Below are positions 3,994-52,160 of a DNA stretch of 64,000 nucleotides, piece after piece. Position numbers and translations under genes: made by a program. This DNA comes from Dicyema japonicum (taxonomy: Eukaryota > Animalia > Dicyemida), in assembly GCA_011109175.1 (NCBI GenBank), contig RDEW01000044.1, positions 9,402-73,401 of the forward strand, given 5' to 3'. Within the stretch, counting starts at the first letter, position 1. Each line of letters opens with the position of its first letter. The notes beneath the pieces were generated by a model. That model was given only the letters and a program-made list of their open reading frames with translations. It had not been told where the DNA came from and ran no database searches.

Positions 3994-4726
3994 ATGACTA
4001 GTAACTCTATGATTGCATTCATTTATTCCGATTGCGCTTTAATTGCCTCTGATTGTGTTAAGGATAATGATATTCCTATGCGTGACTCTTAGTAATTTAC
4101 ATATAGCTGGCGATAACTTTTGCTACAGAATATTTCAAATCACCGATTTTATAGCAGTTGGGATATCAGGGGTAGAAATCGGAATTATAAACTTATACTA
4201 TGAGTCATTCAACATAATATAGTTTCTGTCATCATTAACAGATAGTGAACATTATTATAAGGAATCTCATGTTTCTTTTTCGTTATCATATTTTTCCGGT
4301 AAACTCGCTGCTTATATGAAAAGTCATCGATATCCGACGGTTTGACGTTAATCTATTTTAGGAAGCTATAGTCATTGGCCTTGATAAGGATATGAAGGTT
4401 AATCTGATGAAAATAGACACTAAGGGAAATTTGGCTGTGAAAGATATAGCTTGCATTGGAGCTAGATCAGCAGAGGTTCAGAGAATTTTAACTGAATAGT
4501 ATTTATGTTCTCATTGCTTTTAGTGTTATAGGTTACCATCCTGAAAATACTGATCTTGCTGTTCTAATCTCCTTTAATCTTTTATTTAATGAATCAACGT
4601 TTAAACGCTTTGGGGTTTTCACCAAGAGTATTAGCGTATATTTTTTTAGTGTGGATTATTGGTCCTTCTATGGAAAAGGGATGTTTCATAACTATTAACA
4701 GAGATAGAAAAATCCAATTTGTTTAA
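3994..4726 (+). CDS. Highly divergent proteasome-subunit-like (Ntn fold, beta3-like by eye) protein, 204 aa, 6 exons; paralog A
   Basis: GT-AG introns 4082-4106, 4222-4245, 4340-4361, 4499-4523 and 4628-4649 (22-25 nt) give an intact 615-nt frame: MTSNSMIAFIYSDCALIASD..RIFQITDFIAVGISG..YPTEAIVIGLDKDMKVNLMKIDTKG..CIGARS. This follows the proteasome pattern (NCVAIAAD / KIF..GLAG / TEPVIAGLD). Confidence 0.75.
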
Positions 4727-6599: not shown

Positions 6600-7090
6600 A
6601 ACATAAACTCGATTATACAACTCGCTAGTGAAACTTATACTACTATGTAACGCTGGTACCTGGGCATGCTCAAGAAATAAATTAAGGATGCTTATTGCAT
6701 TTCATAGAGACCAACTACGGCAGATGATGTTCAAAAGAAGTTATGCGAGGATGTTATCTAATCTTCTCTATAAAAGGACGAGGACCTCTGAAATTTTAAA
6801 TGAAATTCTGGATACACGATAGAGGCTTTTCGGCCATATTCTGCGACTAAACCTAGATTTCCCCGCGAGCGTAGCCATGGAGGATTATTTCATGTTTGAA
6901 GCCCCCCGTTTCCATGGTCGCCCAAGGACGACACTGCCAGTCGTTCTCGACGAGGACTTCAAAGAAATGGGACGGCATCTTGGAAGTTGAAAGGATCTGA
7001 CTGGTTACGTACTGCGGCTTTGAATAAGAGGAAGTGATTGAAATTAACTATGAATTGCTAACTCGTGTTGCACATGCTTTGTCAAGTCCT
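6600..7090 (+). mobile_element. RTE-like LINE C-terminal remnant
   Basis: Translates to AFHRDQLR..RLFGHILRL..FHGRPRTTLPVVLDEDF; same family as 11.6 kb and 33 kb. Confidence 0.75.
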
Positions 7091-11569: not shown

Positions 11570-12400
11570 ATACACGTGGACACTGTATAGCATGGGTTCA
11601 AGATTGGTAGATGGATGGAGACATTCCAGAAAGCTCGGCTCCCTCCTCGGGGATGGTGAGGACATATCCCAGAGGAAAGTACTATCGACGGTCGCACTGA
11701 ACAGGATAAAGACGGATTGGTTGGCTGACAGACAAGTAACGATCGCGCTTCGTTTGCGCATCTATAATGCTTTCGTGAAACCGGTCCTGCTATGTATCTC
11801 TTCCTGCTGGGGAATCTCGGTCTCAGAAGCCAAAAATCTTAACTCCTTCCACCGAAGGCAATTACGAATACTTTGTGGGCTACAATGGGCGACACGGATC
11901 AATAATGAGGCACTGTACCGAAAGTGCTCAACGCGACCTGTGATNATATATCTCTTCCTGCTGGGGAATCTCGGTCTCAGAAGCCAAAAATCTTAACTCC
12001 TTCCACCGAAGGCAATTACAAATACTGTGTGGGTTACAATGGCCGACACGGATCAACAATGAGGCACTGTACCGAAAGTGCTCAACGCGACCTGTGACAT
12101 GAGATGTGGTAGAGGCCCGATGGAGAATGTTTGGACACGTCCTACGGATGGGTCCCACATCACCTGCAAATTTGGCTATGGAGGAATATTTCGCTGCAAG
12201 TGGAAGTAAATATCGTAGACGCCCGTGTACTACGCTACCGGGGGTGCTGGATGAGGATCTTAAGGAAATCAACCGGAGGCTCGTAATTGGGGAGGATCTG
12301 GATTCTATGAGAAGTTTGGCATGTAACAAGAGAGGATGGACGAGATTTATCGGTAAAATCGCTTTAAGTGCCGCACGTGTGGAAACATAACAATTATGTT
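11570..12400 (+). mobile_element. RTE-like LINE 3' portion (internal duplication at N 11945)
   Basis: LRLRIYNAFVKPVLL..NSFHRRQLR..RWRMFGHVLRM..RRRPCTTLPGVLDEDL. Confidence 0.85.
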
Positions 12401-12620
12401 TCTAGGATAGTTGCCTATAATAATAATCAATACACAGTAATGTCTTGATTAAAGTGCATGAAAAAAATTCTAATGGGTCGATTATTCCTTGAAAAAAACC
12501 TATCATTTTGAATTTCAACTATCTTAATAGCGTGAAGAGTATTAACAGACAAAAAAGAACTTCAACCAATTAGCCACATAGCACCACATGCCATACTTTA
12601 TTTTTTTAAATTTATTACAT

Positions 12621-13163
12621 ACAGAAGAAGCGCCGGAAGGGGAACACGTCATGCTGCTCTGAATGATGTGATCGTCAGAGCTCTGACGGCTTCAGGCTTC
12701 CCAGCACAGTTTGAACCGATGGGTCTTGATCGAGGAGATTGGAAGAGACCTGACGGGATGACCCTTTTCCCCTTCACGTCTGGAAGATCTTTGGTCTGGG
12801 ACGCAACTTGCATAGACACGTTCTCAAGCACGAACATTTTTAAATCGGTTCAGACACCTGGAGCAGCTGCTTCGACTGCGGAAAACCTAAAAATCAAGAA
12901 ATATTCTTGCCTCGGGGATCGCTACCGATTTACTCCTGTTGCGACCGAATCATCGGGAGCCGTTGGTCCAATGACGGCTGAATTCTTGCAAGAACTCGGA
13001 GGATTGCTTGCCAGAAAGAAAAGGGATCAACGAGAAGGGTTATGGCTAAGACAAAAGATTGGAATAGCCATACTCCGAGGGAACTCGTTCGCAATCCACG
13101 CAGCAGGCTTCCTCAACTGACATTTGTTTAATTGTTAAAAAAAATTTTTGTTAAAAAAAAAAA
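12621..13163 (+). mobile_element. 5'-truncated CRE-clade non-LTR element (RLE domain) with 9-bp TSD
   Basis: RHAALNDVIVRAL..KRPDGMTLFP..WDATCIDT..AENLKIKKY..AILRGN; A-rich tail; 'ttattacat' at 12612-12620 and 13164-13172. Confidence 0.85.
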
Positions 13164-14373: not shown

Positions 14374-15086
14374 TCAGTTTAAAATCATATTTGCAATGTC
14401 GGAAATAAAGTTCCCCTTTTGAATTATCTGATTGAGGTACCAAACTGAATAAGTATGATGACTACTTGTATACTTTCCCAAGTTCGTCAAAGGCTCCGCA
14501 TTGTAGAAGACATTGGAAGCTACCCGGATAGCATCATTAGTATCCGCCGGTCTGTCACTTCTTAGTCTACAGTGATGGAGTACATTTACAAGCGAATTAA
14601 ATCCCTCACCAACAGCTTTGCGCTAGATCCAATGCAAAAGACGTCGTTAGCGTAAACATTGGCTGTGACGTCAAAGCACATCAAACTAATAGAATTCGAC
14701 TCGACTCCGAGAATTAGCAACTCCTAAAGTACGCAATTCCCCCAAACTGTGTCAAATTTTCGTCCTTTCATATATTTTTGAAGTTGGGGTACGAAATGTC
14801 TCATCGGAATACAAATCCGATATTGTTGAAAATATTGGCTATTTTTTTAGTAAAAAAAAAACTTCGCGTAATATACGGATGCGTTGTGTAAGTCCAGAAC
14901 TTCCCATTCCACACCAAACATTCCAACGGCGAGAGACTTTGTTATTTGAAATATCCTGATGCAAGGATCATCGCTATCTGAATGTAATAAAATGTCACAT
15001 TGAGGAGTATCGTTATCACCTGCAGAGTCGGAGGCAATTATTGCACAGTTTGAGTATTTAAATGCAATAATCACGTTACTCGGCAT
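14374..15086 (-). CDS. Highly divergent proteasome-subunit-like protein, 199 aa, 6 exons; paralog B
   Basis: GT-AG introns 14978-14998, 14839-14862, 14724-14747, 14567-14589 and 14445-14465 (21-24 nt) give an intact 600-nt frame: MPSNVIIAFKYSNCAIIASD..RIFQITKSLAVGMFG..FDTELLILGVES..CIGSSA. It aligns end to end with paralog A. Confidence 0.75.
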
Positions 15087-18850: not shown

Positions 18851-19560
18851 TAATTGGAGTGATGAGCGAGTTCTTCCATATTTGGGAGATAGAGTTCCAG
18901 TTAACAAACAGGTTAAAAATTTCCGTTATGTAGATAATTGCGTATTTGCTTAGGTATTTTAGGTGAAATGAAGATACTTTGTCTGGGTCGCAGGCCCGTA
19001 AGTTTTTTAATCCGACGATAACCTCTGAAACCTGCTTATCTGAGAATAGTTCTTGGTAAGGTTCATTTTTCGGTTTTCGGGCACGTACTTTGATATCCAG
19101 TTGTTTAGAGAATTTCTTGAAGCTGATCGCAGCGTAATGTTTCATAAGTAGATTAGGGCGTATATGACAAATATTTTAGGAGAGGAGTTACAGGTTCCAT
19201 TCGCATCTTCCAACTCTGATTTACTTTGTTTTAATGTTTTCCAAAAATGATGAGATGAACTTTACCCGTCAAGGCGATTGATTAGAACAGCATGAGAAGC
19301 AGCGTCCACGAAAAGCATTCGAATACTTGTGCCAATAATTTTTTTCCAATTTGTATTAAAATTGTCTAATTAATAGGGAGAATAGGTTTTTTCTTAGAAA
19401 ATATTTAAAAATGCGCCAATAAGCGAGGATGACTATATAACAAATCCAGATGAGTCTGATAGTGATCTTGACCGTTCTTGACACTAAATGGAGTCCAATA
19501 ATAAAGGTAATAATGGTTGGACCTAAGAAGAGAATATTGAGTTATAAAATAATTACTTTT
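18834..19560 (-). mobile_element. APE-RT LINE fragment (pre-RT region)
   Basis: MKHYAAISFKKFS..DPDKVSSFHLKYL..WKNSLITPI is homologous to the 41291-41953 ORF. Confidence 0.7.
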
Positions 19561-19571
19561 ACTTATTTTTT

Positions 19572-19655
19572 NNNNNNNNNNNNNNNNNNNNNNNNNNNNN
19601 NNNNNNNNNNNNNNNNNNNNNNNNNNNNNNNNNNNNNNNNNNNNNNNNNNNNNNN
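19572..19655. other. Assembly gap
   Basis: N run. Confidence 1.
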
Positions 19656-25607: not shown

Positions 25608-28493
25608 TTAATAAAGCATTATTTTAAGGAAAATCTAAAATATCAGTAGCAGAAACTCTAATTCCGTCATTAATTTTAATTATAGTAGGATTATCAGGTA
25701 AGGAGAGCACCAGTTCATCCACTTTAGTGAGATATTTAATGACATCACAATACTCATTCAAATAATCTAGATCAGTTGCGTCAACGTAAACTGCACTTAT
25801 AAAACACAAAATACATCTTTTTGGTGTCCTGAATTCCCCTCTGAGAGATCTGACTAACTGAGTGACCTTTATGACGGTTTCCATTCTTCTACATGCTACC
25901 TTGCTATCAAAATTCCACATTTCAGGCCATTTTCTGTAAGCAACGGGTTTGTACGATTCCTTGCCTCCGTGATAAAGCAGCCACTCGCAAATAAATGGAA
26001 TAAAGGGACTCAACAAGACTAAACAGCATTGACTACACCTATAAAGACACTGTTGAATAGACTGAATCTCATCACTGCATACAGTATTGAACCTCCACTT
26101 TGTCGCCTCCTTATTATCAAAGTTATGTGAATAACAACCAAATAAAATCCACACAGTTCATTCAGCCAAAAATTGCGAAGTTGTGACAGAATCAAATGAA
26201 AGTCTCGATTTTCGAAATGAACGTCAAACGAGGCCACAATCTGTGATGTCCGAGAATACATCCACATCTCCATATCCGTTTCAAATCCAGTCAACTAAGC
26301 ATTATAACCAACAATCACAAGTGGAATTGGCAGTGGAGTAAAATCAGGGGACAATTTCATGTTAATAAAGCGAATAGTCTGCCATATTTTATTAAAAAAC
26401 ATGCGCACTGAAGTGAACAAATCTGAGCCTACCTTTACATGTGAGACTAAAATAAGAAAGAAGGAAACCTTTTATTTCATGAGAACACAAAGCAAATCTC
26501 AGAGAATCTGCTCCAACGACAAAATTATTATGCATAGGTCTCTAAGCATAACAAATCACAAACCTCAATAAAATTAAGGGGATCAATGACATTGCCCACA
26601 GACTTACTCATTTTCCTACCCTTTCCGTCACAAACTAATCCGTGAAGCAAAACACCATCAAATGGCATCTTCCCCAATAATAGCAAAGACATGAGCATCA
26701 TACGGGCAACCCAAAAGAAGACGATATCACCACCAGTTTCCAAGAGAGCTTGAGGAAAATATTGATCAAGGTTTGGATTATCTGGCCACCCAAATACAGC
26801 AAATGGAAGAAGAGCAGCAGAAAACCACGTGTCTAGCACATCGCTATCCTGTTCAACTGTTATTGTCTCAGGATTCGAATTAGGGAACATCTGACCAGCG
26901 ATATTGAACGCCTGTTCCTTTGATCTAGAAACAATCCAACTCGAATCAACGCCGTTGGATACTTTGAAGGCTGGAATTCGGTGTCCCCACCACAATTGAC
27001 GAGAAATACACCAATCTGGTGACTTACTCAACCATTCCTTCAATATATTCTCATAAAAGGGGGGAGTAATCCTAGGATTTCCAGATCTTAGTGTTTCGAG
27101 AACTTTTCGATGTCCATCTCGACAATCCATAAACCACTGTTCCATGATGATTTTTTCCAAAACATCTCCAGTTCGACTGCACGTGGGTATTTGATAGGAA
27201 TGATCAACATTTCCAGAATACAAATTTTCCTCTATCAGTCTGTCTACCAGAAGTCGACGAACTTCAAATCGGTTTAATCCCTAATTTTATGAGATAATAA
27301 GCTAAACGTCGAAAGGAGTATCTGTCCCAAAAATATTCCCAGAGTCATCGATAATCCTACTTCCCGGTTTAAGCCCATGTTTGCTGGCTAATTCATAGTC
27401 AACTGGACTGTGATGAGGAGTTATTTTCAGTCCTCCCGATCCAGTCTCTATATCGACGGATATGTCTCCAATAATGGGAAGATTTTGACGCGTGAAAGGG
27501 TGGAAGACAGAACGACCAATAAATCTGTTCCATCGTTGATCGTTTGGGTGCACCGCCACGGCCATGTCTCCCAACATTGTCTCTAGTCGTGTTGTCGAAA
27601 CTGTCAATCGTTCATCTTAACAGTAAAAATGCAAACTACCGGAATCAACAATTGGATAAATAAAGTTGTGAAGGACCCCAAATTGTACTTTATACGGGTA
27701 GTTGGGGACATTCCTAAAACACTCCCCGTCGACTTTCAGGAGATTTACCTAAGACATAGAAAAGATGAGTGCCTCAATATCTGAAACAACTGATTGCAGT
27801 GCAGGACACCAGTTCACGAATCTATTAGATCGATAGATCAAACCCATCTCATAGAGACGAATAAAGGACTCCTCCACCGCGGCAGTCAGATTCTGTCTTA
27901 AATTACGAGACCAACCTTATCCATTGTGAAATATTTGAATCGTTTATCGAATGAGCATCCCAGTTTAGCCAACTGGTTGTAAATCTCCCCTTCTTTGCTA
28001 ATTTTATAATATCACAAAACCTTATCCGCCATTTCTGAACCTCCTGGATAAAACCATTCCTTCCAAGATCAAATCTGTTCACTCCTTTAGATTCTGCCAA
28101 ATGTCGTTCAACAATCGTCTGTGTTGCAATTCCAGCATGGTCACAGCCGGGGACGAACAGAGTTTTCTCCCTTCCTTCAAATCTCTTCCTGCGAACTATG
28201 ATATCCTGCAATGTGCAGCCAAGAGCGTGCCCCATATGAAGATTTCCAGTTACATTTGGCGGTGGCATGCAAATTACAAATTTTTTGCAAGAATCCTCCT
28301 TTTCTATATTGAAATGCCCTGATTTCGTCCACCATTTTGTGAGGACTGGTTCTATTGACAGAGGATCGTATTTAGTATTTAATTGCCCTGAAATTATGTA
28401 AAAGTTACCTTTTTGGCCAAATATTCGCTGGAGGGAATTACCGCATCCCCTTATGACCAATTTAATAATGTTATTTGTTTTTAAATTTCTCAT
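25608..28493 (-). CDS. VARS: Valyl-tRNA synthetase, probably mitochondrial; at least 10 micro-introns
   Basis: [13 protein letters not shown] (HIGH), [49 protein letters not shown]. Introns of 22-29 nt at 27998-28020, 27893-27915, 27749-27772 (GC-AG), 27616-27639, 27281-27307, 26542-26563, 26447-26468, 26295-26318, 26110-26138 and 25635-25656 join the ORFs in frame. Confidence 0.93.
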
Positions 28494-29598: not shown

Positions 29599-31830
29599 TT
29601 GATAGGGAAAGACCTAGCAACCTACCCTATATTTAAATGCCAAGAAAATCTTATGAGCAAATTCTCCTACGATCTAATTGGAAGCAACGTTACTGCAAAA
29701 CATCAAATCTCGAGTCTTCGTCACACAGAATCTCACAAGTTCGCAACATGGAACGTAAGAGGCTTAAGCGAAGGGAAACTAGAAGTCGTAAAAAGAGAAA
29801 TGAGAAGGCTTGATATTGACCTGCTTGGAGTAAGCGAACTTCATTGGATTGACAGTGGTTTTTTTCGTTCTGATGATTTCGTCATATATTATTCTGGTAA
29901 CATTAATGCGAAGAGAAACGGAGTGGCCTTCATTGCTTCAAAGAAAATTGCACCTGCTATTGAAAGTCATAGAAAATTTAATGATCGGATAATACTAATC
30001 CACGTCCGTGGACGACCATTGAATATTACGGTCATGCAAGTGTATGCCCCAACATCCATTGCCAAGGATGACGAAATTGACCAATTTTATTATGAATTTC
30101 AAGAAGCACTAAAACTAATACCCAAAAAGGACATAACCTACATAATGGGGGATTTCAATTCAAAAGTTGAATGTATGCCACATACGGATATTGTGGGAAG
30201 TTTTGGTTTGGGGAAAAGAAATGAACCACTAAAACTAATACCCAAAAAGGACATAACCTACATAATGGGGGATTTCAATTCAAAAGTTGAATGTATGCCA
30301 CATACGGATATTGTGGGAAGTTTTGGTTTGGGGAAAAGAAATGATGCTGGGGATCGACTGGTCCAATTCTGTCAGGAAAATGGATTTCAGATAACTAACA
30401 TATGGTTCAAATAGCACAAACGACGATTATACACTTGTACGTCGCCAAATGGAATGTCTAGGAACCAGATTGATTATATTTTGTGCGCCAAACGTTGGAA
30501 AAGCTCTATAACAGCCGTCAAAACATATCCAGGGGCAGACTGTGGAACAGACCATCAGCTACTTGTTGCAAAAATTAGGAAGAAATTCAGAAACACTTGG
30601 AATACCCCCCGAGTAAAAAAATTCGATGTCTCAAACATACCACCAGAATACGCAATGGAAGTTAAGCACAATATTGGATTACTGGATTTGAACGGAAGGA
30701 TGCCTGATGAATTATGGAATGATATGTAGTTGGTTATCAGGAACGCTGCAATAAAACATGTCAAATACAAAACGCCGGCCAAGTGCTCTGAGTGGCTTTC
30801 TGCCAACACCCTAAACATTGCTGAGGCTCGTAAAACTGCTAAAGTCTCTGGGAATATAGACGAGATAAGAAAACTTAATTCTGAATTCAAAAAGGCAGGC
30901 AGGAAGGATAAAGAAGACTACTGAAGGTTACACTGCAAAAAAATGGAAGATGAATATAAGAGAGGTCACACTAGAAATGCGTATTTACAACTAAAAAGAT
31001 TACGAGCCCCCTTTACGAAAATGATGGGCAAAATCAAGGACAAGGATGGTGTAGAACTGCTAAGCCAACAGAACATCCGATATGGTTGGAGAGAATATAC
31101 GGAACGACTATATTCAGAAACTGTGTCCCTGAGATTCAGAGAAGGGAGCGCCGTCTTTGGTTTATTGCTGAATGTCAAGAAGACCAAAATTATGACTGCT
31201 AATAATGGAATAATGGAACTAAAAATTGGGAATGAGAAAATAGAGAGTTGCGATAATGCTTTCTGAGATGTCTAATTAATTAGAATGGTGAGGCTTGGAA
31301 AATTATAGGCGAATTGCAGCCTTCCTGAAATTGAATAGAATTTGGAAAAACAAAGATATTTGCTTAAAGACCAAATGCAGACTGGTTAATGCAATCGTGT
31401 TCACGGTTTGTCTATACGGTGCAGAATCATGGATACTGAAAAGGCGAATAGACGGAAAATTGATGCTTTTGAACTTTGGTGCTAGAGGAGTTTACTAAGA
31501 ATCCCTTTGACTTGCAAAATAACAAACACCGATGTACTCAAACGGGTGGAGACGGACATTTCGCTAAAAGGAAGAATCGTAAAACACAGATTGGCGTTCT
31601 TTTGGCATGTTGTTCGCTCTGATTCCCTGGAAAGAACCATTATGCTGAGCAATATTACTGGGAAGATAAGACCTAGTTTACCGAGGACTCGGTGACTATC
31701 CACGGTAGAAGACGTCACGGGAATGTCTATATCAAGGCTACTCCAAATTGCGACGGATCAGGGAGAGTGGAAAAATTGGCTCATGAGATCTCCAAGGGTC
31801 GGACACGACTTAATTTGGATAACATAACAT
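29599..31830 (+). mobile_element. RTE (BovB-type) LINE, internally deleted (RT core missing)
   Basis: APE: ATWNVRGL..LGVSELHW..QVYAPT..MGDFNSKV..RNQIDYIL..GADCGTDHQLL. The C-terminus joins directly at ~31130. A 5' 'gcaacctaccctatatttaaatgccaagaaaat' motif resembles BovB 5' sequence. Confidence 0.9.
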
Positions 31831-32825: not shown

Positions 32826-33890
32826 AAAAAACACTCCCGAGAAAACAAAATTAGTTAATTTTCCCTTGTGTCGTATTCCGAATCTCCGTCTGCCTCGACC
32901 ATGATCTACTGTTGCGCGCTAGTTCTCTTAGGTAGTCTAGGTCGTCTGCTGAAGTCAGTCTCGTATAACGTCGATAGGTCTTCATTCAAGATAGTCAGAA
33001 GTGTCGTTCTTGGCCTTCCACGGAATCCGGCTCCTGTGTGTGCGACATTTGCGGAGACCTGGTCATTTAGACGTAACACGTGGCCAAAGAGGCTCCATTT
33101 TGATTTGAAAATATCATCTGACAGCACGCTGGATTTGTATTTATTATAAAGGTTTGCATTAGAGATTTTCATAGGCCAGTTGATCTTGATTACCGATTTG
33201 AGCTGAGTTCTGTGGAAAGAGTCAAGACTGTCCATTTCCAGCTTAGAAATTCCCCAAGTCCAGGAGTTGTAGGTTATAACAGGGATGACAAAAGCTTTGT
33301 ATATTCTAAGCCTGACGTTTAATCCTATCCTCTTCTTGTGATTCCATATTAACGATATTTTTTTCAGTGCACTCATAGCAAGGATCTTCTTACGAGTAAC
33401 ATCTTCAGAGTTTCCTAGAAGCGAGTCAACCTTTTTTTGCCTTCTCCATGACTCTTCCGATCTCCGATCAGTACGTGTAAGTATTGTAAACTCCATTTTT
33501 TCTGGATTTAAGGATAAGAACCATTTCTAAAATATGTGTGGGAGTACGCTGAGCATGTGCTAAATGTTTGAGTATCCTCAGAAACAAATTCCAGATCGTC
33601 CGCATAAATTATCTCCTCATAGTTGTTTCCAATCAGGGTCCTGAAATCTCTTAGTGTAGCTTCAAGGTAAACAATAAAGAGGCCCGTGGATAGCGAGTCC
33701 CCCTGTGGAACTCCACGTGAAGTCGGAAAAAAGTTGGAGGTACATTTGCCAATTTTGACAGAAAATGAGTGTTCCGCATGAGAAGGCGTATTATTTAACG
33801 TCGTCTGGGTGAAGAAAACTTTTCAGTACTTCCATAAGTTTTCCCCGGTGTACCGAATCGAATGCACGGGGCATATCAATGTCAAGTAAA
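32826..33890 (-). mobile_element. RTE-like LINE, RT core to 3' UTR
   Basis: DMPRAFDSV..GVPQGDSLS..YADD..RLRIYKAFVIPV..SLFGHVLRL..FRGRPRTTL. Confidence 0.9.
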
Positions 33891-37704: not shown

Positions 37705-40130
37705 TATTTATTTAACACCCCTAGACAACGGTAAAACCAAACTAACTATCACTTGATCCCGATGCGTTCTACCAAAATCCTCATCCTTTTTCGGTGCTCC
37801 TCCCTCATGCCCACACAAGCTCCTACTGGACGGCTGACTGTATTTGCAGGGCCACCTTTCCGCAAGCCGGAGTTTAGTTTCATGAGGACATCCAGAGTAG
37901 TCGGTCCGGTTCTGTGTCTCCCACAAGTCCACCGCTCCGTGACTCTGAAAGCCTTCTTTTGTACGTCCTCGATTTTCTTAGTATTCGTCCATGATAACGA
38001 AGGTCCCCACGAAGCACACGCGTACGAGAAGCATAGTTCAATGTATTGTATGTAGATATTCATCAAGACCGAGTGGGTACCGGTCTTCCATATTTTAGAT
38101 AAACATTTCAATACATTGATTTCCTTCTCGCACTTAAGAACAATGTTTGCCACGTGTGGTGACAAACATAAGTGCGTATCCAGTGTCACGACCAGGATCT
38201 TCTGACATTTGCTGAAAGGGATTTTAACGTTTTCCAATTTTAAGGTCTTCTCCAACCTTTCGTCCGAAGTAAACATAGACCGACTTTCTGGAATTTACCG
38301 TGAGTTGGTTATTAATAACCCAGGCGTTGAGTCGGTCCAAGTTAATTTGTAATCTTTCTGTAGCATTTTGGATATTTCGATCACGCGAGGCCAAAACAAT
38401 GTCGTCCGCATATGATAGTAGAACATCGTTCTTGGATTCTGGTGTCGGGAGGTCTGTCAGATATAAATTGAATAAGGCGGGGGATAAAGGAGATCCTTAG
38501 GGGAAACCGTTTGGGAGAAGACGTGAGACTGATTTCAGTCCTCCGAGGCATACACTTCCCCTCCGTCCACTTAGAAATTTGTTATCCAAAGTTTAAGCTT
38601 CCCCGGGATCTCCGACTGGAAAATTTTCTTTGATAATATTTTTCTCGAAATAGAATCAAAGGCCTTGTTAATATCAATGGAACATAAGACTGTTTTCAAA
38701 TGCTTTGGTTTGTTTGAAAATCCGTCTCTAATGAAGTTGGTTAATTTCTGTAGGTACGTTGATGTAGAACAATCGCTCTTGTATCCGTGTTGAAAATCCT
38801 TTTCTAATAAAAAAGCCTTGATTCTTCCAAGTACAAGCCTCTCCAGGATTTTCGATACGGAACATAACAATAACACAGGTCTAAATGATGCCGGGTCTTT
38901 CTTAAGTTTTCCAGGTTTCAGTATAGGTCGGATGTTGGCTTGCTTTCATAATAACGATTTTACATTCCAATTAATTGAATAGTTGAAAATCGACGTTAGA
39001 AAACTGACTCCCATATCTCAAAGGTTCTTCAATAACACTACTGGAATGTTGACTTCTCTCTTGATCTTCATCACAATCGGGTTATGATCGCTTCTTGTTT
39101 CATAGAAGACTGACCAGGTAATTTTCGATGAAAGTGATGTGGAACAGAGTGCTACGTCAGGAGAGGTAGGCTGGTCCGTCTCTCTGAGTGGGGTCTTTGT
39201 ATTTCTCGCTGAGTTATTCAGTATCGTTAGGGAGTCCGTTTTCCATAACAATTGCTTCCCTCTCGTGTCGGCCTGTTGGGTTGACAACCATAAGGGGTGT
39301 TTTGAGTTTAAATCTCCACATTTGATGATCTCCTCGTAGATAGCCAATCTTGATAAATTTGGAATAACATAGTACTTTGGAGAGGAGCCGGGAAGAGACA
39401 AGTAGATATTCACGAGGCACAGACTTCCTTTCGTTGTCCCAAGCGAGATTCCAACTGCCTCAGTAACCTCGTCGTTTCCAACAAGTTTTCTCACTTCCGA
39501 AGTAATGTCTCTGCATTTCAGGTTCTTTTTGAATAGAGTAAGTAGTCCGCCCCCTCTTCTCTTTTTGCGGTCCATCCTGATAGCCTCGTATCCAGGGAAT
39601 GAAGGAGTGGGATCATTCATGCGGAGTTTAGTTTCTTGGATCATAGCCACGTCGATCTTCTGATTTGCCAGAATTGAACGGAGTTCCCTGACCTTGCCTT
39701 TAGTTCCGTTGATGTTCAATTGGAGAGCAGTAAATTTCCTTTCTCCACAGTGGGCTGAGGGTTTTCTCCAGGAATGTTTAGACTTTTTTTGAACACATCG
39801 CCGGGGGGTCGATAATGACCCCGAGAGGAAAGGGTCTAATGGTCCTTTTTTGGGAGTGCATTAGAAGCTCTCTGGGCGTTGCCAAATGCTTTTGAATTTT
39901 TTGAATTGATGGACCACATAACGCCACGTTACACACGCTACAATGACTAATTGTGTACACAACGAGGGACACGTGGTCACAACGAGGATTTCGAAGTGCT
40001 CCGTTCAAGAGAACTGTCCGGTCTAATTTAATCGAAGGTGGCACCCATACAGCCATCAGGGCAATTTCCTCAAGTTTGATTGCATCAAACGATGAAATTC
40101 TCTACGAAATATGGAATTTTCCCCTAGTAG
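37705..40130 (-). mobile_element. Ingi/Vingi-like (I-group) LINE, near full length and decayed
   Basis: Cys-rich N-terminus; APE (NINGTKGK..IQETKL..CGDLNSKH..SPDVAL..SDHNPI); RT (RPVLLL..FQHGY..DINKAFDS..YADD); (taaa)n tail. Confidence 0.85.
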
Positions 40131-40139
40131 CAGTGGCGG

Positions 40140-41290
40140 GCTCGACGGAATGAGACCTGGCTACCTGAAGTATCTAACCTCTTTGTCTGTAGAAGAGCAG
40201 AACTTCGTCTTACTAATTCAATTACTTCACTTATGAATTGGATCATGTCTGGAGTTCTTCCCGAAGTTATCCGCCATGTCCTGTTCTCCACCAATTTGAT
40301 ATCCTTTGATAAGAAGGGAGGCGGAGTACGACCAATTGCGGTCGCGTTTTTCTTCAGAAGACTGATTGATAAAATTGCCTCCAGACATTCTATTCCACTC
40401 GTCACAAAATTCTTGAACCTTTCAAGTATTCGCCTGGATGCTGTCCATTCAATGAGGACATTCACAAACCGCAGTATAAAAGAATCCCGGGGACATGTCC
40501 TGGTCAAACTGGACATCAAGAACGCCTTCAATAGTCTAAGGAGGGACAATATCCTGGAGGCGTGTGTTGAGAGATGCCCTAATATTTTCGAATTTGTGAA
40601 TCAGTCATACAGTCTACCTTCATCTTTACTTTTCGGGGACTACCTAATCCATTCGTATTCTGGAGTGCAACAGGGAGATCCCCTTGGACCCCTATTGTTT
40701 TGTCTTGCAATGGAGAAAATCACCAAACTTCCGTGCTCGCCCCTCAACCTATGGTATCTGGATGATGCGGTCCTCGGAGGACCCCCGGATACTGTTTTCC
40801 GGGATTTGGAAGTGATAATTCCAGCATTGTTGGAGGCTGGACTAGAATAAAATTACACTAAATGCGAAATCTACAATTGCGGACTTTCAGAGGAGAAGTA
40901 TTCATAAGCTTTGTCATGTTTCGGAAATTTACTGCCTGGAAGTATTTCCACACCCGATGAAGAACTTATATTCCTCGGATACCGGATCACCATAAATGCA
41001 ATGGGAAGAGCTATACGTGAAAAACGACTGTTACTCGAAGAGACTCTGAACCGCTTGTGTCTACTCGACATGCATACAGCATTATTCCTCCTGAAAAACA
41101 GTCACAACATACAGAGGCTTGCATATGTCCTAGGACTGCTCCCTATTTCACCCTGTATGACCAACTCACATAGATTAACGAGATCTTCCGTACGACAGCG
41201 GAACTTATCTTCAAGAAGCGATGGACATCACTTATTGATTCTCTATCGCCAAATACACCCGAGACACTGATATGGAGGAAAATTAAATAT
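40140..41290 (+). mobile_element. CRE-clade RT fragment
   Basis: GMRPGYLK..NLISFDKKGGGVRPIAV..KLDIKNAFNSL..GVQQGDPLGPLLF..WYLDDAVLGG. Confidence 0.85.
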
Positions 41291-42855
41291 TTGAGACGTT
41301 GCAATGAAGGCTCTGAAAAAGTCCTCCACGGACAGGGATGTAGCAACATCGACCCAAATATTTTAATGAAGCACTATGTCGCGATCAGCCATAAAAATTT
41401 CTCGAGGGAACACAGAGTCTACAAGAAGTTGTATCCATCATATGATTTGATTGTCTTTACTCCAAAAGAAGTTCGAAATGCAATCATGGATGTCAAAAAC
41501 TCCAGTTCCCGAGGTGCTGACAATGTCTCGATGATGGAACTGAAACACCTTGGTGAAAAAGCAACCAAATTCCTATCATACGTTTATACTATATCTGTGA
41601 ACAATAATATGATATTTTCTATATCGAAGAAATCCATAATTCTGTCAATTCGGAAGCCAAACAAGCCTGCAAACGATCCCTCTTCTTATCGTCCAATTGC
41701 AATACTATGTGCAATGTCCCGAATTTTAGAAAAATTAATCTTAACACGAATCAAAAATAGTGTACCAAATCGAGTATTCCAGCATGGATTCCGTGAAAAT
41801 CATTCTACTACGACTCACTTAACAAAATTAACTCTACATATTTCTGATGGATTCTCTTATCCAAAACCACATAAAAGGAGCATAATGGCTTCAATAGACT
41901 TGAAGAAAGCATTCGACTCCGTTTCCCTTTGGTCTGGGACGCAACTTGCATAGACACGTTTTCAAGCACGAACATTTTTAGATCGGTTCAGACACCTGGA
42001 GCAGCTGCTTCGACTGCGGAAAACCTAAAAATCAAGAAATATTCTTGCCTCGAGGATCGCTACCGTTTAGATCGCTACGTAAAAATTTTTGTTTAAGAAA
42101 ATAAATAAATATATTTCTGACCACTAATCCAAAACCACATAAAAGGACCATAATTGCTTCTATAGACATGAAGAAAGCATTCGACTCCGTTTCCTGGACG
42201 CTGAAAATTTCTAACACTCTTATAAATCCAAACATTAAAAGATGGCTGTCGAACTTTTTAAGTGGAAGAAGAGGACAAGTGATGTCAGACAACAGAAAAT
42301 CTAAATCCCGTTTATTGCCGAATGGTGTCCCTCAAGGTTCACCTCTCTCTCCCCTGCTCTTCAACCTGTATACCAATGACCTCCCACCAACGACGATCCC
42401 TATACATTAATACTCTCATATGCAGATGACATTGTTATTTCAACGAGAGACTCTAACTATGAGAAGGCAGGGATAAAACTTCAAAGTTATATTAGTATGC
42501 TGGAACATTGGCTCACATCAAATCGACTGGAAGTTTCTACAGGAAAGTCGTTTATAACAATTTTCTCTACATATATAAGATCATTATCAAATTGTTTGGA
42601 TATGAAATTTCTATGAATAAGTCTCCAACAATACTAGGATTAAAGTTGGATACTCTCCTGACATTCGGCCAACATGTCAATGACGTTATTACCAAAGTCA
42701 GGAGAAGGACCAACATATTGAAAATTTTGTCCCGATCACCAATCGGGCACAAAACCTTCTTACTACAGAAAATTTACAGACAATACATACTGCCAGTAAT
42801 CGAATATGCATGTCCCTCCTGGAGCTCGATGATTTCTGAATCGTCGTCTCAAAAA
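41291..42855 (+). mobile_element. I-group LINE RT, interrupted by a CRE fragment
   Basis: SYRPIAILC..FQHGFR..DLKKAFDSV..GVPQGSPLSP..YADD..PTILGLKLD..YACPSW. Confidence 0.85.
41927..42126 (+). mobile_element. Short CRE RLE fragment + tail, flanked by a 68-bp direct duplication
   Basis: Matches 12790-12925. Flanks 41859-41926 and 42127-42194 are 64/68 identical. Confidence 0.7.
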
Positions 42856-47889: not shown

Positions 47890-50010
47890 TATTTATTTAA
47901 CACCCCTAGACAACGGTAAAACCAAACTAACTATCACTTGATCCCGATGCGTTCCACCAAAATCCTCATCCTTTCCCGGTGCTCCTCCCTCATGCCCACA
48001 CAAGCTCGTACTGGGCGGCTGACTGTATTTGCAGGGCCACCTTTCCGCATGCCGGAGTTTAGTTTTATGAGGGCCTCCAGAGTAGTCGGTCCGGTTCTGT
48101 GTCTCCCACAAGTCCACCGCTCCGTGACTCTGAAAGCCTTCTTTTGTACGTCCTCGATTTTCTTAGTATTCGTCCATGATAATGAAGGTCCCCACGAAGC
48201 ACACGCGTACGAGAAGCATGGTTCAATGTATTGTTTGTAGATATTCATCAAGACCGGGTGGGTACCGGTCTTCCATATTCCAGATAAACATTTCAATACA
48301 TTGATTTTCTTCTCGCACTTCAGAACAATGTTTGCCACGTGTGGTGACAAACATAAGTGCGTATCCAGTGTCACGACCAGGATCTTCTGACATTTGCTGA
48401 AAGGGATTTCAACGTTTTCCAATTTTAAGGTGACAGTCTTCTCCAACCTTTCGTCCGAAGTAAACATAGACCGACTTTCTGGAATTTACCGTGAGTTGGT
48501 TATTAATAACCCAGTTAATTTGTAATCTTTCGGTAGCATATTGAATATCTCGATCGCGCGATGCTAAAACAATGTCGTCCGCATATGAGAGTAGAACATC
48601 GTTATTGGATTTCGGTGTCTGGAGGTCGGCCAGGTATAAATTGAATAAAGCGGGGGATAAAAGAGATCCTTGGGGGACACCGTTTGGGAGAAGACGCGAG
48701 ACTGAGTTCAGCCCTCCGAGGCATACACGTCCCCTCCGTGAGTATAGTCATCCTATGGAAAAGTTTCTTCGCCCTGTGAATATTTCGGATGGCTTTCCAC
48801 ATTTCTAGAATTGTCCAAGTAAAGTATTTGATCGCATTTTCTAGAGATTTGAAGCTGTCCAAGTAACAATTCTTCAGTCTATCATCCGAGATTGCGCGAT
48901 ACAATTCCCAATTAGCAGCTTTGTAATTATAACTAGTAGGTGTTCTCCTCACTTTGACTTCTCTCTTGATCTTCATCACAATCGGGTTATGATCGCTTCT
49001 TGTTTCGTAGAATAATGACCAGGTAATTTTCGATGAAAGTGATGTGGAACAGAGTGCTACGTCAGGAGAGGTAGGCTGGCCCGTCTCTCTGAGTGGGGTC
49101 CTTGTATTTCTCGCTGGGTCATTCAGTATGGTTAGGGAGTCCGTTTTCAACAACAATAGCTTCCTTCTCGTGTTGGCCTATTGGGTTGACAACCATAAGG
49201 GGTGCTTTGCGTTTAAATCTCCACATATGATGATCTCCTCGTAGATAGCCAATCTTTGGGCAGGAGCCGGGAGGAGGTAAGTAGATATTCACGAGGCACA
49301 GACTTCCTTTCGTTGTCCCAAGCGAAATTCCAATTGCCTCAGTAACCTCGTCATTTCCAACAAGTTTCTCACTTCCGAGGTAATGTCTCTGCATTTCAGG
49401 TTCTTTTTGAATAGAGTAAGTAGTCCACCCCCTCTTCTCTTTTTATGGTCTATCCTGATAGCCTCGTATCCAGGGAATGAAGGAGTGGGATCATTCATGC
49501 GGAGTTTATTTTCTTGAATCATGGCCACGTCAATCTTCTGATTTGCCAGGATTGAACGGAGTTCCCTGACCTTGCCTTTAATTCCATTGATGTTCAATTC
49601 GAGAGCAGTAATTTTCCTTTCTCCACAGTGGGCTGAGGGTTTTCTCCGGGAATGTTTAGACTTTTTTTGAGCACATAGCCGGGGGTCGATAATGACCCCT
49701 AGAGGAAAGGGTCTAATGGTCTTTTTTGGGAGTGCATTAGAAGCCCTCTGGGCGTTGCCAAATGCTTTTGAATTTTTTGAATTGATGGACCACATAACGT
49801 CACGTTACACACGCTACAATGACTAATTGTGTTCACAACGAGGGACACGTGGTCACAACGAGGATTTCGAAGTGCTCCGTTCAAAAGAACTGTCCGGTCG
49901 AATTTAATCGAAGGTGCACCCACACAGCCATCAGGGCAATTTCCTCAAGTGTGATTGCATCAAACGATGAAATTCTCCTCGAAATACGGAATTTTCCTTT
50001 AGTAGCAGTG
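47890..50010 (-). mobile_element. Ingi/Vingi-like LINE, copy 2 (different internal deletions)
   Basis: Homologous to 37705-40130. Confidence 0.85.
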
Positions 50011-50014
50011 GCGG

Positions 50015-50676
50015 GCTCGACGGAATGAGACCTGGCTACCTGAAGTATCTAACCTCTTTGTCTGTAGAAGAGCAGGACTTCGTCTTACTAATTCAAATAC
50101 TTCACTTATGAATTGGATCATGTCTGGAGTTCTTCCCGAAGTTATCCGTTATGTCCTGTTCTCCACCAATTTGATATCCTTTGATAAGAAGGGAGGCGGA
50201 GTACGACCAGTTGCGGTCGCGTTTTTCTTCAGAAGACTGATTGATAAAATTGCCTCCAGACATTCTATTCCACTCGTCACAAAATTCTTGAACCCCTCAA
50301 GTATTCGCCTGGATGCTGTCCATTCAATGAGGACATTCACAAACCGCAGTATAAAAGAATCCTGGGGACATGTCCTGGTCAAACTGGACATCAAGAACGC
50401 CTTCAATAGTCTAAGGAGGGACAATATTTTGGAGGCGTGTGTTGAGAGATGCCCTAATATTTTCGAATTTGTGAATGTCATACAGCCTACCTTCATCCTT
50501 ACTTTTCGGGGACTACCTAATCCATTCGTATGCTGGAGTGCAACAGGGAGATCCCCTTGAACCCCTAGTGTTTTGTCTTGCAATAGAGAAAATCACCAAA
50601 CTTCTGTGCTCGCCTCTCAACCTATTGTATCTGGATGATGCGGTCCTCGGAGGACCCCCGGATACTGTTTTCCGGG
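50015..50676 (+). mobile_element. CRE-clade RT fragment, copy 2
   Basis: Homologous to 40140-40803; runs into the gap. Confidence 0.85.
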
Positions 50677-51559
50677 NNNNNNNNNNNNNNNNNNNNNNNN
50701 NNNNNNNNNNNNNNNNNNNNNNNNNNNNNNNNNNNNNNNNNNNNNNNNNNNNNNNNNNNNNNNNNNNNNNNNNNNNNNNNNNNNNNNNNNNNNNNNNNNN
50801 NNNNNNNNNNNNNNNNNNNNNNNNNNNNNNNNNNNNNNNNNNNNNNNNNNNNNNNNNNNNNNNNNNNNNNNNNNNNNNNNNNNNNNNNNNNNNNNNNNNN
50901 NNNNNNNNNNNNNNNNNNNNNNNNNNNNNNNNNNNNNNNNNNNNNNNNNNNNNNNNNNNNNNNNNNNNNNNNNNNNNNNNNNNNNNNNNNNNNNNNNNNN
51001 NNNNNNNNNNNNNNNNNNNNNNNNNNNNNNNNNNNNNNNNNNNNNNNNNNNNNNNNNNNNNNNNNNNNNNNNNNNNNNNNNNNNNNNNNNNNNNNNNNNN
51101 NNNNNNNNNNNNNNNNNNNNNNNNNNNNNNNNNNNNNNNNNNNNNNNNNNNNNNNNNNNNNNNNNNNNNNNNNNNNNNNNNNNNNNNNNNNNNNNNNNNN
51201 NNNNNNNNNNNNNNNNNNNNNNNNNNNNNNNNNNNNNNNNNNNNNNNNNNNNNNNNNNNNNNNNNNNNNNNNNNNNNNNNNNNNNNNNNNNNNNNNNNNN
51301 NNNNNNNNNNNNNNNNNNNNNNNNNNNNNNNNNNNNNNNNNNNNNNNNNNNNNNNNNNNNNNNNNNNNNNNNNNNNNNNNNNNNNNNNNNNNNNNNNNNN
51401 NNNNNNNNNNNNNNNNNNNNNNNNNNNNNNNNNNNNNNNNNNNNNNNNNNNNNNNNNNNNNNNNNNNNNNNNNNNNNNNNNNNNNNNNNNNNNNNNNNNN
51501 NNNNNNNNNNNNNNNNNNNNNNNNNNNNNNNNNNNNNNNNNNNNNNNNNNNNNNNNNNN
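50677..51559. other. Assembly gap
   Basis: N run. Confidence 1.
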
Positions 51560-52160
51560 ATCCGTCATGTAGAAGTCACCTTTTCTGATATATTTTTTCT
51601 ATACCGTTTCTGCATCCGATCTAGTACATACCAGAAGGATAGATTCTTGATTCAAATTTTAAGGCTTTGTCCTTCTATTTTCAAATCAACACACCCTTCC
51701 ATATTTATAGACTTGACCACAAATATCCCTTTGGATAAAGCATCTCCATCTTATCTGTCGATAAAGAGTCTCAATTTCGTCCGTAGGGGATTCCTCTCAC
51801 GTATAAATTCATAACTTTTGACGGTTAAAATTTATTACAGCTTTTTTGGATTACCATCTTTTCATAAAATCGTAGATGCGTCTTCACAGATATTTATCTG
51901 CTAACAGTATCCACTTCCTCCCGTGTTGAATATTCCATGGCCCAACCACATGAACTCTTTGATGGAAAATCCCGATAGTGGTTCCAGGCTACACCAGTTA
52001 CGGCGAAACTAAAGAAACTTCATTAATATTCGACTTCAAACTGACAATCACCTCTTGAGGAATGTAGTCAGTCACAATATCCTATATGGTTTTAAGTATA
52101 TCCACATAAACAAGAAGTGACGACGAAATATTAAACCCCATTTATTACGGCCATAAGTAC
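51560..52160 (-). CDS. Putative micro-intron host gene of unknown function (partial)
   Basis: Short frames joinable by 24-26 nt GT-AG introns (..PQEVIVSLNFAVTGVAWNHYRDFP..MEYSTREEVDT|THLRFYEK). The model is incomplete. Confidence 0.3.

Follow-up and report, generated by a model that had tools for sequence, protein, structure and literature searches.

Two intron-split genes in a 64,000-nt stretch of the Dicyema japonicum genome, hereafter the window, are predicted to encode extremely divergent, catalytically inactive relatives of the beta-type subunits of the proteasome. Gene A lies at 3994–4726 on the + strand and gene B at 14374–15086 on the − strand. The two are lineage-specific duplicates that purifying selection has maintained, and they may serve as structural subunits of a remodelled 20S core. 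Alpha subunits stand closer to the beta consensus than the predicted proteins do, and the latter show no specific affinity to any of the eukaryotic beta types with which we compared them.

Gene A is interrupted by five micro-introns

In an ORF scan with the standard code, 3994–4726(+) gave no ORF of any length, consistent with the remark in the initial annotation that the ORF track misses this gene. Removal of five GT..AG introns of 25, 24, 22, 25 and 22 nt reproduced exactly the 204-aa frame that had been described there. The resulting CDS is 615 nt long and has 204 codons plus TAA; it starts with the ATG at 3994 and ends with the stop at 4724–4726.

The predicted gene has six exons, all on the + strand. 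Exon 1 (3994–4081, 88 nt) encodes amino acids 1–29 plus 1 nt and covers strands S1–S2, with Asn4 at the position of Thr1 and Asp20 at that of Asp17; it is followed by intron 1 (4082–4106, 25 nt, GTGAC...TAG, phase 1). Exon 2 (4107–4221, 115 nt) carries Arg37 at the Lys33 position and then an 'AVGISG' turn, and intron 2 (4222–4245, 24 nt) is in phase 2. Exon 3 (4246–4339, 94 nt) and intron 3 (4340–4361, 22 nt, phase 0) precede exon 4 (4362–4498, 137 nt), where 'CIGARS' stands in place of the beta-subunit GSGS. Intron 4 (4499–4523, 25 nt, phase 2) leads into exon 5 (4524–4627, 104 nt), in the C-terminal third of the protein, which is not recognisably proteasome-like. Intron 5 (4628–4649, 22 nt, phase 1) and exon 6 (4650–4726, 77 nt including the TAA stop) complete the gene.

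None of the five introns can be coding, since four of them have lengths that are not divisible by three and would break the frame, and the 24-nt intron 2, if kept, brings in an in-frame TAG at 4220–4222 that spans the exon 2/intron 2 boundary. The only animals with reported introns of 21–29 nt are Dicyema japonicum and myxobolid myxozoans (PMC13644364). The sequencing runs that contain the gene A locus include a fraction of ~0.5 of its 31-mers, a value that fits spliced RNA or a slightly different DNA.

We also considered a ciliate-type reading of this DNA, with 15-nt introns like those of Stentor or Paramecium and with TAA/TAG read as Gln. This was rejected because the standard code works, gene A stops with TAA and gene B with TGA, and metazoan non-LTR retrotransposons are present in the window.

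Gene B has the same exon–intron architecture

A tblastn search of the 64-kb window with the spliced A protein detected gene B (E=7e-23); the same search detected no second beta-like locus besides B and no canonical beta gene within the window. Gene B (14374–15086, − strand) is predicted to have six exons, at 15086–14999, 14977–14863, 14838–14748, 14723–14590, 14566–14466 and 14444–14374, which together make 199 codons plus TGA. Its introns are 21, 24, 24, 23 and 21 nt long, and all five occupy the same positions and phases as those of A: codon 30 (phase 1), codon 68 (phase 2), the boundary of codons 99/100 (phase 0), codon 145 (phase 2) and codon 180 (phase 1). The exon lengths of A and B are 88/88, 115/115, 94/91, 137/134, 104/101 and 77/71 nt, respectively. 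Even the 5′ ends of the introns are partly alike in the two genes (GTGAC/GTGAC and GTTTG/GTTTG), the 21-nt intron 1 of B having the GTGAC start. Gene B independently supports the predicted model of gene A.

The A and B proteins are 33.7% identical to each other (blastp, 123 bits, E=2e-39). Exon 1 is the best conserved part, with 62% identity, and the middle and C-terminal exons are at 21–27%; the N-termini of both proteins read M-[T/P]-S-N. From Nei-Gojobori counts we obtained pN=0.40 and pS=0.68, which give dN/dS <= 0.31 with synonymous sites near saturation. As pS is close to saturation and pN is not, purifying selection has acted on both A and B since the duplication.

The two genes face each other, and the ~9.6 kb between them consist of retrotransposon debris and unannotatable sequence. 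We noted in this spacer retrotransposon-like ORF fragments (listed span 11592–13120), as well as two translated stretches, 6610–6999 and 11757–12300, that are 38% identical over 113 aa (tblastx). From this content, A and B are parted by repeat debris and not by ordinary genes.

Gene A is homologous to beta-type proteasome subunits

The initial annotation had described A as a proteasome-like (Ntn) protein. Searches of the public libraries (Pfam, NCBIfam, PDB and ESM-Atlas) were made exon piece by exon piece. Exon 4 of A matched the Pfam family PF00227 with 20.2 bits (E=4.9e-4, profile positions 107–149 of 189), the gathering score being 22.4; the other pieces of A and all pieces of B gave no Pfam match. 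The NCBIfam search of the pieces returned noise only, and phmmer/hmmsearch against PDB with exon 4 of A and the exon 1–2 piece of B returned either nothing or designed repeat proteins. In ESM-Atlas, PF00227 was found in 87 of the 100 nearest clusters (fragments) for exon 4 of A and in 89 of the 100 nearest for the exon 1–2 piece of B, with a top score of 0.95; the C-terminal piece of B was not recognised there. A profile of exon 4 of A searched against 1.84 billion representatives hit 5 spurious repeat proteins and no relative. This blank result means only that other sampled organisms have no close relative, since this genome's own proteins are absent from the collection, as the valyl-tRNA synthetase (ValRS) control described below indicates.

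The spliced full-length proteins were compared with a reference set collected by a degenerate motif pattern, GTTTVG...A.D.R, which retrieved 120 loci, nearly all archaeal, and yielded 108 beta and 6 alpha sequences. Searched with the HMM of the 108 archaeal beta sequences (hmmsearch), A reached 16.9 bits, with a single-comparison p=1.6e-7, and B reached 7.2 bits, with p=1.5e-4; both matched in a common register (HMM 46–146 against residues 37–136). When the A+B profile was aligned with the same 108 sequences by hhalign, the local alignment covered 139 columns (A 8–150 against beta 13–154) and scored 41.7, at a probability of 85%. The global alignment of the two profiles ran end to end over 188 columns (A 1–201 against beta 6–199).

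These hhalign scores were judged against several nulls. Column shuffling (n=200) gave 12.9±2.1 with a maximum of 20.5; shuffling in blocks gave 14.4±2.6 for 8 columns and 17.5±3.4 for 15 columns, with a maximum of 29.7; and a reversed alignment gave 13.6. A alone scored 34.1 against archaeal beta (null 13.0±2.0), and B alone, in the same register as A, was a borderline case, its score of 23.4 barely passing the highest null value of 23.3. The local hhalign alignment stops at residue 150, so that the C-terminal third of A lies outside it. The match to the beta profile stays in register across the exon joins, and it comes from the spliced product and not from the unspliced frames.

Taken at the sequence level, the PF00227 match on exon 4, the ESM-Atlas neighbours and the HMM and hhalign scores above the nulls bear out the proteasome-like assignment, and the homology of A to beta-type proteasome subunits is established. 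That of B follows from its clear homology to A.

Both proteins are of the beta type and lack all catalytic residues but Asp17

In hhalign, the alpha profile, which comprised only 6 sequences, scored 25.4 against A+B (6.8% probability), compared with 41.7 for the beta profile. Neither A nor B has the alpha-type N-terminal extension, and only 3 residues stand ahead of the Thr1 position in both. On these features, the two predicted proteins are beta-type and not alpha-type.

From the profile alignment we observed that the Thr1 position is taken by Asn4 in both A and B, and that there is no propeptide. Asp17 is retained as Asp20, and Lys33 has become Arg37 in both. At the GSGS turn, A has GARS and B has GSSA, and the residue at Ser129 is Ala in A. 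The catalytic subunits beta1, beta2 and beta5 are recognised by a propeptide together with Thr1, Asp17, Lys33 and Ser129, and of these features A and B have kept only Asp17. Since Thr1 is lost, no propeptide is present, Lys33 is Arg and, in A, Ser129 is Ala, the predicted A and B proteins cannot act as Ntn proteases of the usual kind. The earlier description of A as apparently non-catalytic, with neither the alpha-subunit N-terminal signature nor a Thr1 with propeptide, is consistent with all of these observations.

A has a second threonine near its start, Thr2, directly after the initiator Met (3994–3999), which would become the N-terminal residue upon removal of the Met; in the alignment it precedes the Thr1 position by two residues. 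B has Pro2 instead (15081–15086). The Thr2 of A, which is not kept in B, is probably coincidental.

A and B lie beyond the alpha–beta distance and have no specific affinity to beta3, beta4 or beta6

Eukaryotic references were collected in two ways. A beta4 motif pattern retrieved 79 eukaryotic metagenome loci, 13 of which had full-length intronless beta4 genes. For beta3, a piece from a fungal contig retrieved 120 fungal beta3 proteins, 77 of which were used in the hhalign profile. A query with an Asgard beta subunit for eukaryotic betas returned archaeal proteins only.

When compared with archaeal beta, the canonical beta3, beta4 and beta6 subunits scored 58–113 bits in the HMM search and 130–194 in hhalign, and the archaeal alpha subunits 71–128 bits and 215, respectively. 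The corresponding values were 17 bits for A and 7 bits for B, and 41.7 in hhalign for the A+B profile. By these scores, alpha subunits stand nearer to the beta consensus than the two predicted proteins do, in agreement with the claim that A is far more divergent than 20S subunits usually are. The ValRS exon of the same window, by comparison, has kept 47–50% identity to other eukaryotes.

A further suggestion, that A is closest to beta3, was not upheld. The A+B profile scored 16.9 (0.6% probability) in hhalign against the 77 fungal beta3 sequences, a shallow profile of fungi only, and hmmsearch with beta3 gave 1–2 bits. The score was 18.8 (1% probability) against the 13 beta4 sequences, also a shallow profile, and 21.8 (2.8% probability) against a single fungal beta6 sequence. 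All three hhalign scores fall within the 13–21 range of the shuffle null or at its edge. An HMM built from A+B and run over every reference gave a median of ~2 bits in all groups and did not discriminate among them.

A carries 'ASD' and 'KRF' motifs, which resemble beta4. The beta4 identity to which they would point was rejected on the 13 beta4 sequences and on the intron positions. The introns of animal beta4 are conserved at codon 31 (phase 1), codon 72 (phase 1) and the boundary of codons 95/96 (phase 0). After alignment, animal beta4 and A/B had no intron site in common, the nearest pairs being 4–5 codons apart.

An ML tree joined A and B as sisters (SH-aLRT 100%) and gave their stem a length of 4.4 substitutions per site. 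The stems of beta3 and beta4 in the same tree measured 1.9–2.0, less than half as much. The pair branched basally in the beta clade, unplaced. Among the tested types, beta3, beta4 and beta6, none can be named from these comparisons as the ancestral type of A and B.

Two minor observations came from the reference sequences. One pattern-matched 'beta' ORF in the tree, from an uncultured Actinomycetota contig (L112), had a branch as long as 6 substitutions per site; it probably matched the pattern by chance or is a highly aberrant homolog. In several fungal-looking metagenome contigs, whose named hits are Pezizomycotina, beta4 lies directly beside another proteasome beta gene. The neighbour is beta6 in L158 (6879–7568, − strand) and L123 (1868–2260, + strand), and beta3 in L169 (704–1162, + strand) and L121 (951–1409, − strand). 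It is on the strand opposite to beta4 in L123, L169 and L121 and on the same strand in L158. In these contigs 20S subunit genes are paired locally.

A possible role as inactive subunits of a remodelled 20S core

An ancestral beta gene of the Ntn-hydrolase family (PF00227) was duplicated in this lineage to give A and B. The Thr1 nucleophile is gone from both copies, and under purifying selection they have drifted past the distance that separates alpha subunits from the beta consensus. We propose that they are now inactive structural subunits in the beta ring of a strongly remodelled 20S core, either as alternative (e.g. stage-specific) isoforms of one ring position or as lineage-specific replacements of ancestral inactive subunits. 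We put the chance that this is their role at about even or a little higher.

A tightly packed ring position would not readily be expected to tolerate a divergence beyond that between alpha and beta. A single beta gene might have expanded into a whole family of ultra-divergent, dead paralogs, which either replaced several inactive positions of the beta ring, so that the ring of the 20S core would now be built of lineage-specific subunits, or went on to a new role; this we entertain only tentatively.

The main alternative, which we find rather unlikely, is that A and B have left the 20S particle altogether for a repurposed, non-proteolytic role, such as that of a scaffold, a binding protein or another structural part. 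The distance from the beta consensus (17 and 7 bits, against 71–128 bits for alpha subunits), the stem in the tree, over twice as long as those of beta3 and beta4, a C-terminal third that is unrecognisable, and the alteration of every catalytic residue but Asp17 would all suit such a departure. However, we saw no positive evidence for any other role, and the parts that are best conserved (exon 1, 62% identity) are the N-terminal strands and the core of the beta sandwich. The proteins also align globally to beta subunits from end to end, with no added domains. Judged by eye, the N-terminus does not look like a signal peptide, and it aligns with strand S1.

The pair arose by duplication of a single gene

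The standard beta types provide a yardstick for the age of the pair. Among themselves, beta3, beta4 and beta6 are 21–27% identical and score 35–59 bits (in fungi and animals, where they evolve slowly). A and B, with 33.7% identity, 123 bits and five common introns in a fast-evolving genome, split much later than the standard beta types did. Such a younger split makes them duplicates of a single gene, and not orthologs of two different subunits. A and B come from one ancestral gene that was duplicated within this lineage, as was implied when the initial annotation placed A and B together in a lineage-specific family; the excess of their identity over 21–27%, the common introns and the sister relationship with 100% SH-aLRT all argue for this.

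A competing account of the pair is that A and B are simply the only orthologs that this organism has of two standard inactive subunits (among beta3, beta4, beta6 and beta7), evolving very fast. The genome is indeed a fast one, in which a ValRS exon is just 47–50% identical to its best matches; lengths of 204 and 199 aa with no propeptide would suit beta3 and beta4; and the 64-kb window has no visible canonical beta gene. We nevertheless consider this account improbable. The likeness of A to B exceeds that among beta3, beta4 and beta6 both in identity and in bits (123 against 35–59), all five intron positions and phases are common to A and B, and the two are fully supported sisters. Moreover, no specific affinity to beta3, beta4 or beta6 was detected, and the introns of animal beta4 lie elsewhere.

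Pseudogene decay, or a choice of introns that merely removes stops, is a very improbable origin of the frames: a free choice of short GT..AG segments can sometimes force an open frame, but here two 34%-identical copies would need the same five introns and phases while staying open over 204 and 199 codons, pS (0.68) is near saturation against a pN of 0.40, and the spliced product fits the beta profile in register across the exon joins.

Comparison with known proteasome subunits

The predicted A and B proteins are like the inactive beta subunits of the eukaryotic 20S particle (beta3/PSMB3, beta4/PSMB2, beta6/PSMB1 and beta7/PSMB4) in being beta-type sequences of ~200 aa that lack Thr1 and keep Asp17, and their absent or minimal N-terminal extension is shared with beta3 and beta4. 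They differ from canonical beta3, beta4 and beta6 in scoring 17 and 7 bits, as opposed to 58–113 bits, with the archaeal beta HMM and in having no specific affinity to any of the three; from animal beta4 they also differ in their intron positions.

Lineage-specific duplicated subunits are known elsewhere, namely the testis-specific beta isoforms of Drosophila and the subunits of the vertebrate immuno- and thymoproteasomes. By analogy with these, A and B may be extra beta copies that arose by duplication within a lineage and plausibly form alternative 20S particles. However, the known duplicated paralogs are easily typed and are mostly catalytic or near-identical isoforms, whereas A and B, themselves 66% different, have no assignable type.

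Of the profiles compared, that of archaeal PsmB matched best (hhalign 41.7, 85% probability), in the same register for A and B. PsmB is an active protease with a propeptide, Thr1, Lys33 and GSGS, in place of which A and B have Asn4, Arg37 and either GARS (A) or GSSA (B).

Implications for the evolution of the 20S core

Few known proteins are as well conserved as those of the eukaryotic 20S particle, with its 14 subunit types; from yeast to human, a ring position normally has a single ortholog that can be recognised as such. As predicted here, A and B are extreme members of this known subunit family. A lineage-specific, selectively kept set of beta subunits that lies beyond the alpha distance would show how far remodelling of the 20S core can go in a parasite of radically simplified organisation, and it would offer studies of proteasome assembly a natural extreme case. 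The interest of A and B hinges on whether or not a canonical beta set exists alongside them.

The two genes are invisible to ORF finders, and they fall below the Pfam cut-off when their exons are searched singly. For these reasons, such genes may be missed in the gene sets, and in the completeness scores, of genomes with tiny introns.

Genomic context

The window has a GC content of ~0.36, and the standard code works throughout. The published D. japonicum assembly has 36.7% GC, 4.1% gaps and 49% repeats (PMC6736024). Non-LTR retrotransposon ORFs, with endonuclease and reverse-transcriptase pieces, were found at 29599–30414(+), 32906–33496(−), 37749–39719(−), 40233–41953(+) and 47934–49156(−). 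The ORFs at 37749–38276 and 47934–48467 are near-identical copies, from which we conclude that recent LINE insertions form a nest over roughly 30–50 kb of the window. Pfam gave no match for ten ORFs in the neighbourhood of A and B.

A valyl-tRNA synthetase gene lies in pieces at 25624–28493(−). One of its exons, of 231 aa, is 47–50% identical to its best matches among 5.8 billion proteins, from other eukaryotes, and returned no self match. This result indicates that the proteins of this genome are absent from the collection, and that its housekeeping genes evolve moderately fast. Runs of N, which are assembly gaps, at ~19500–19600 and ~50600–51560 point to a scaffolded assembly.
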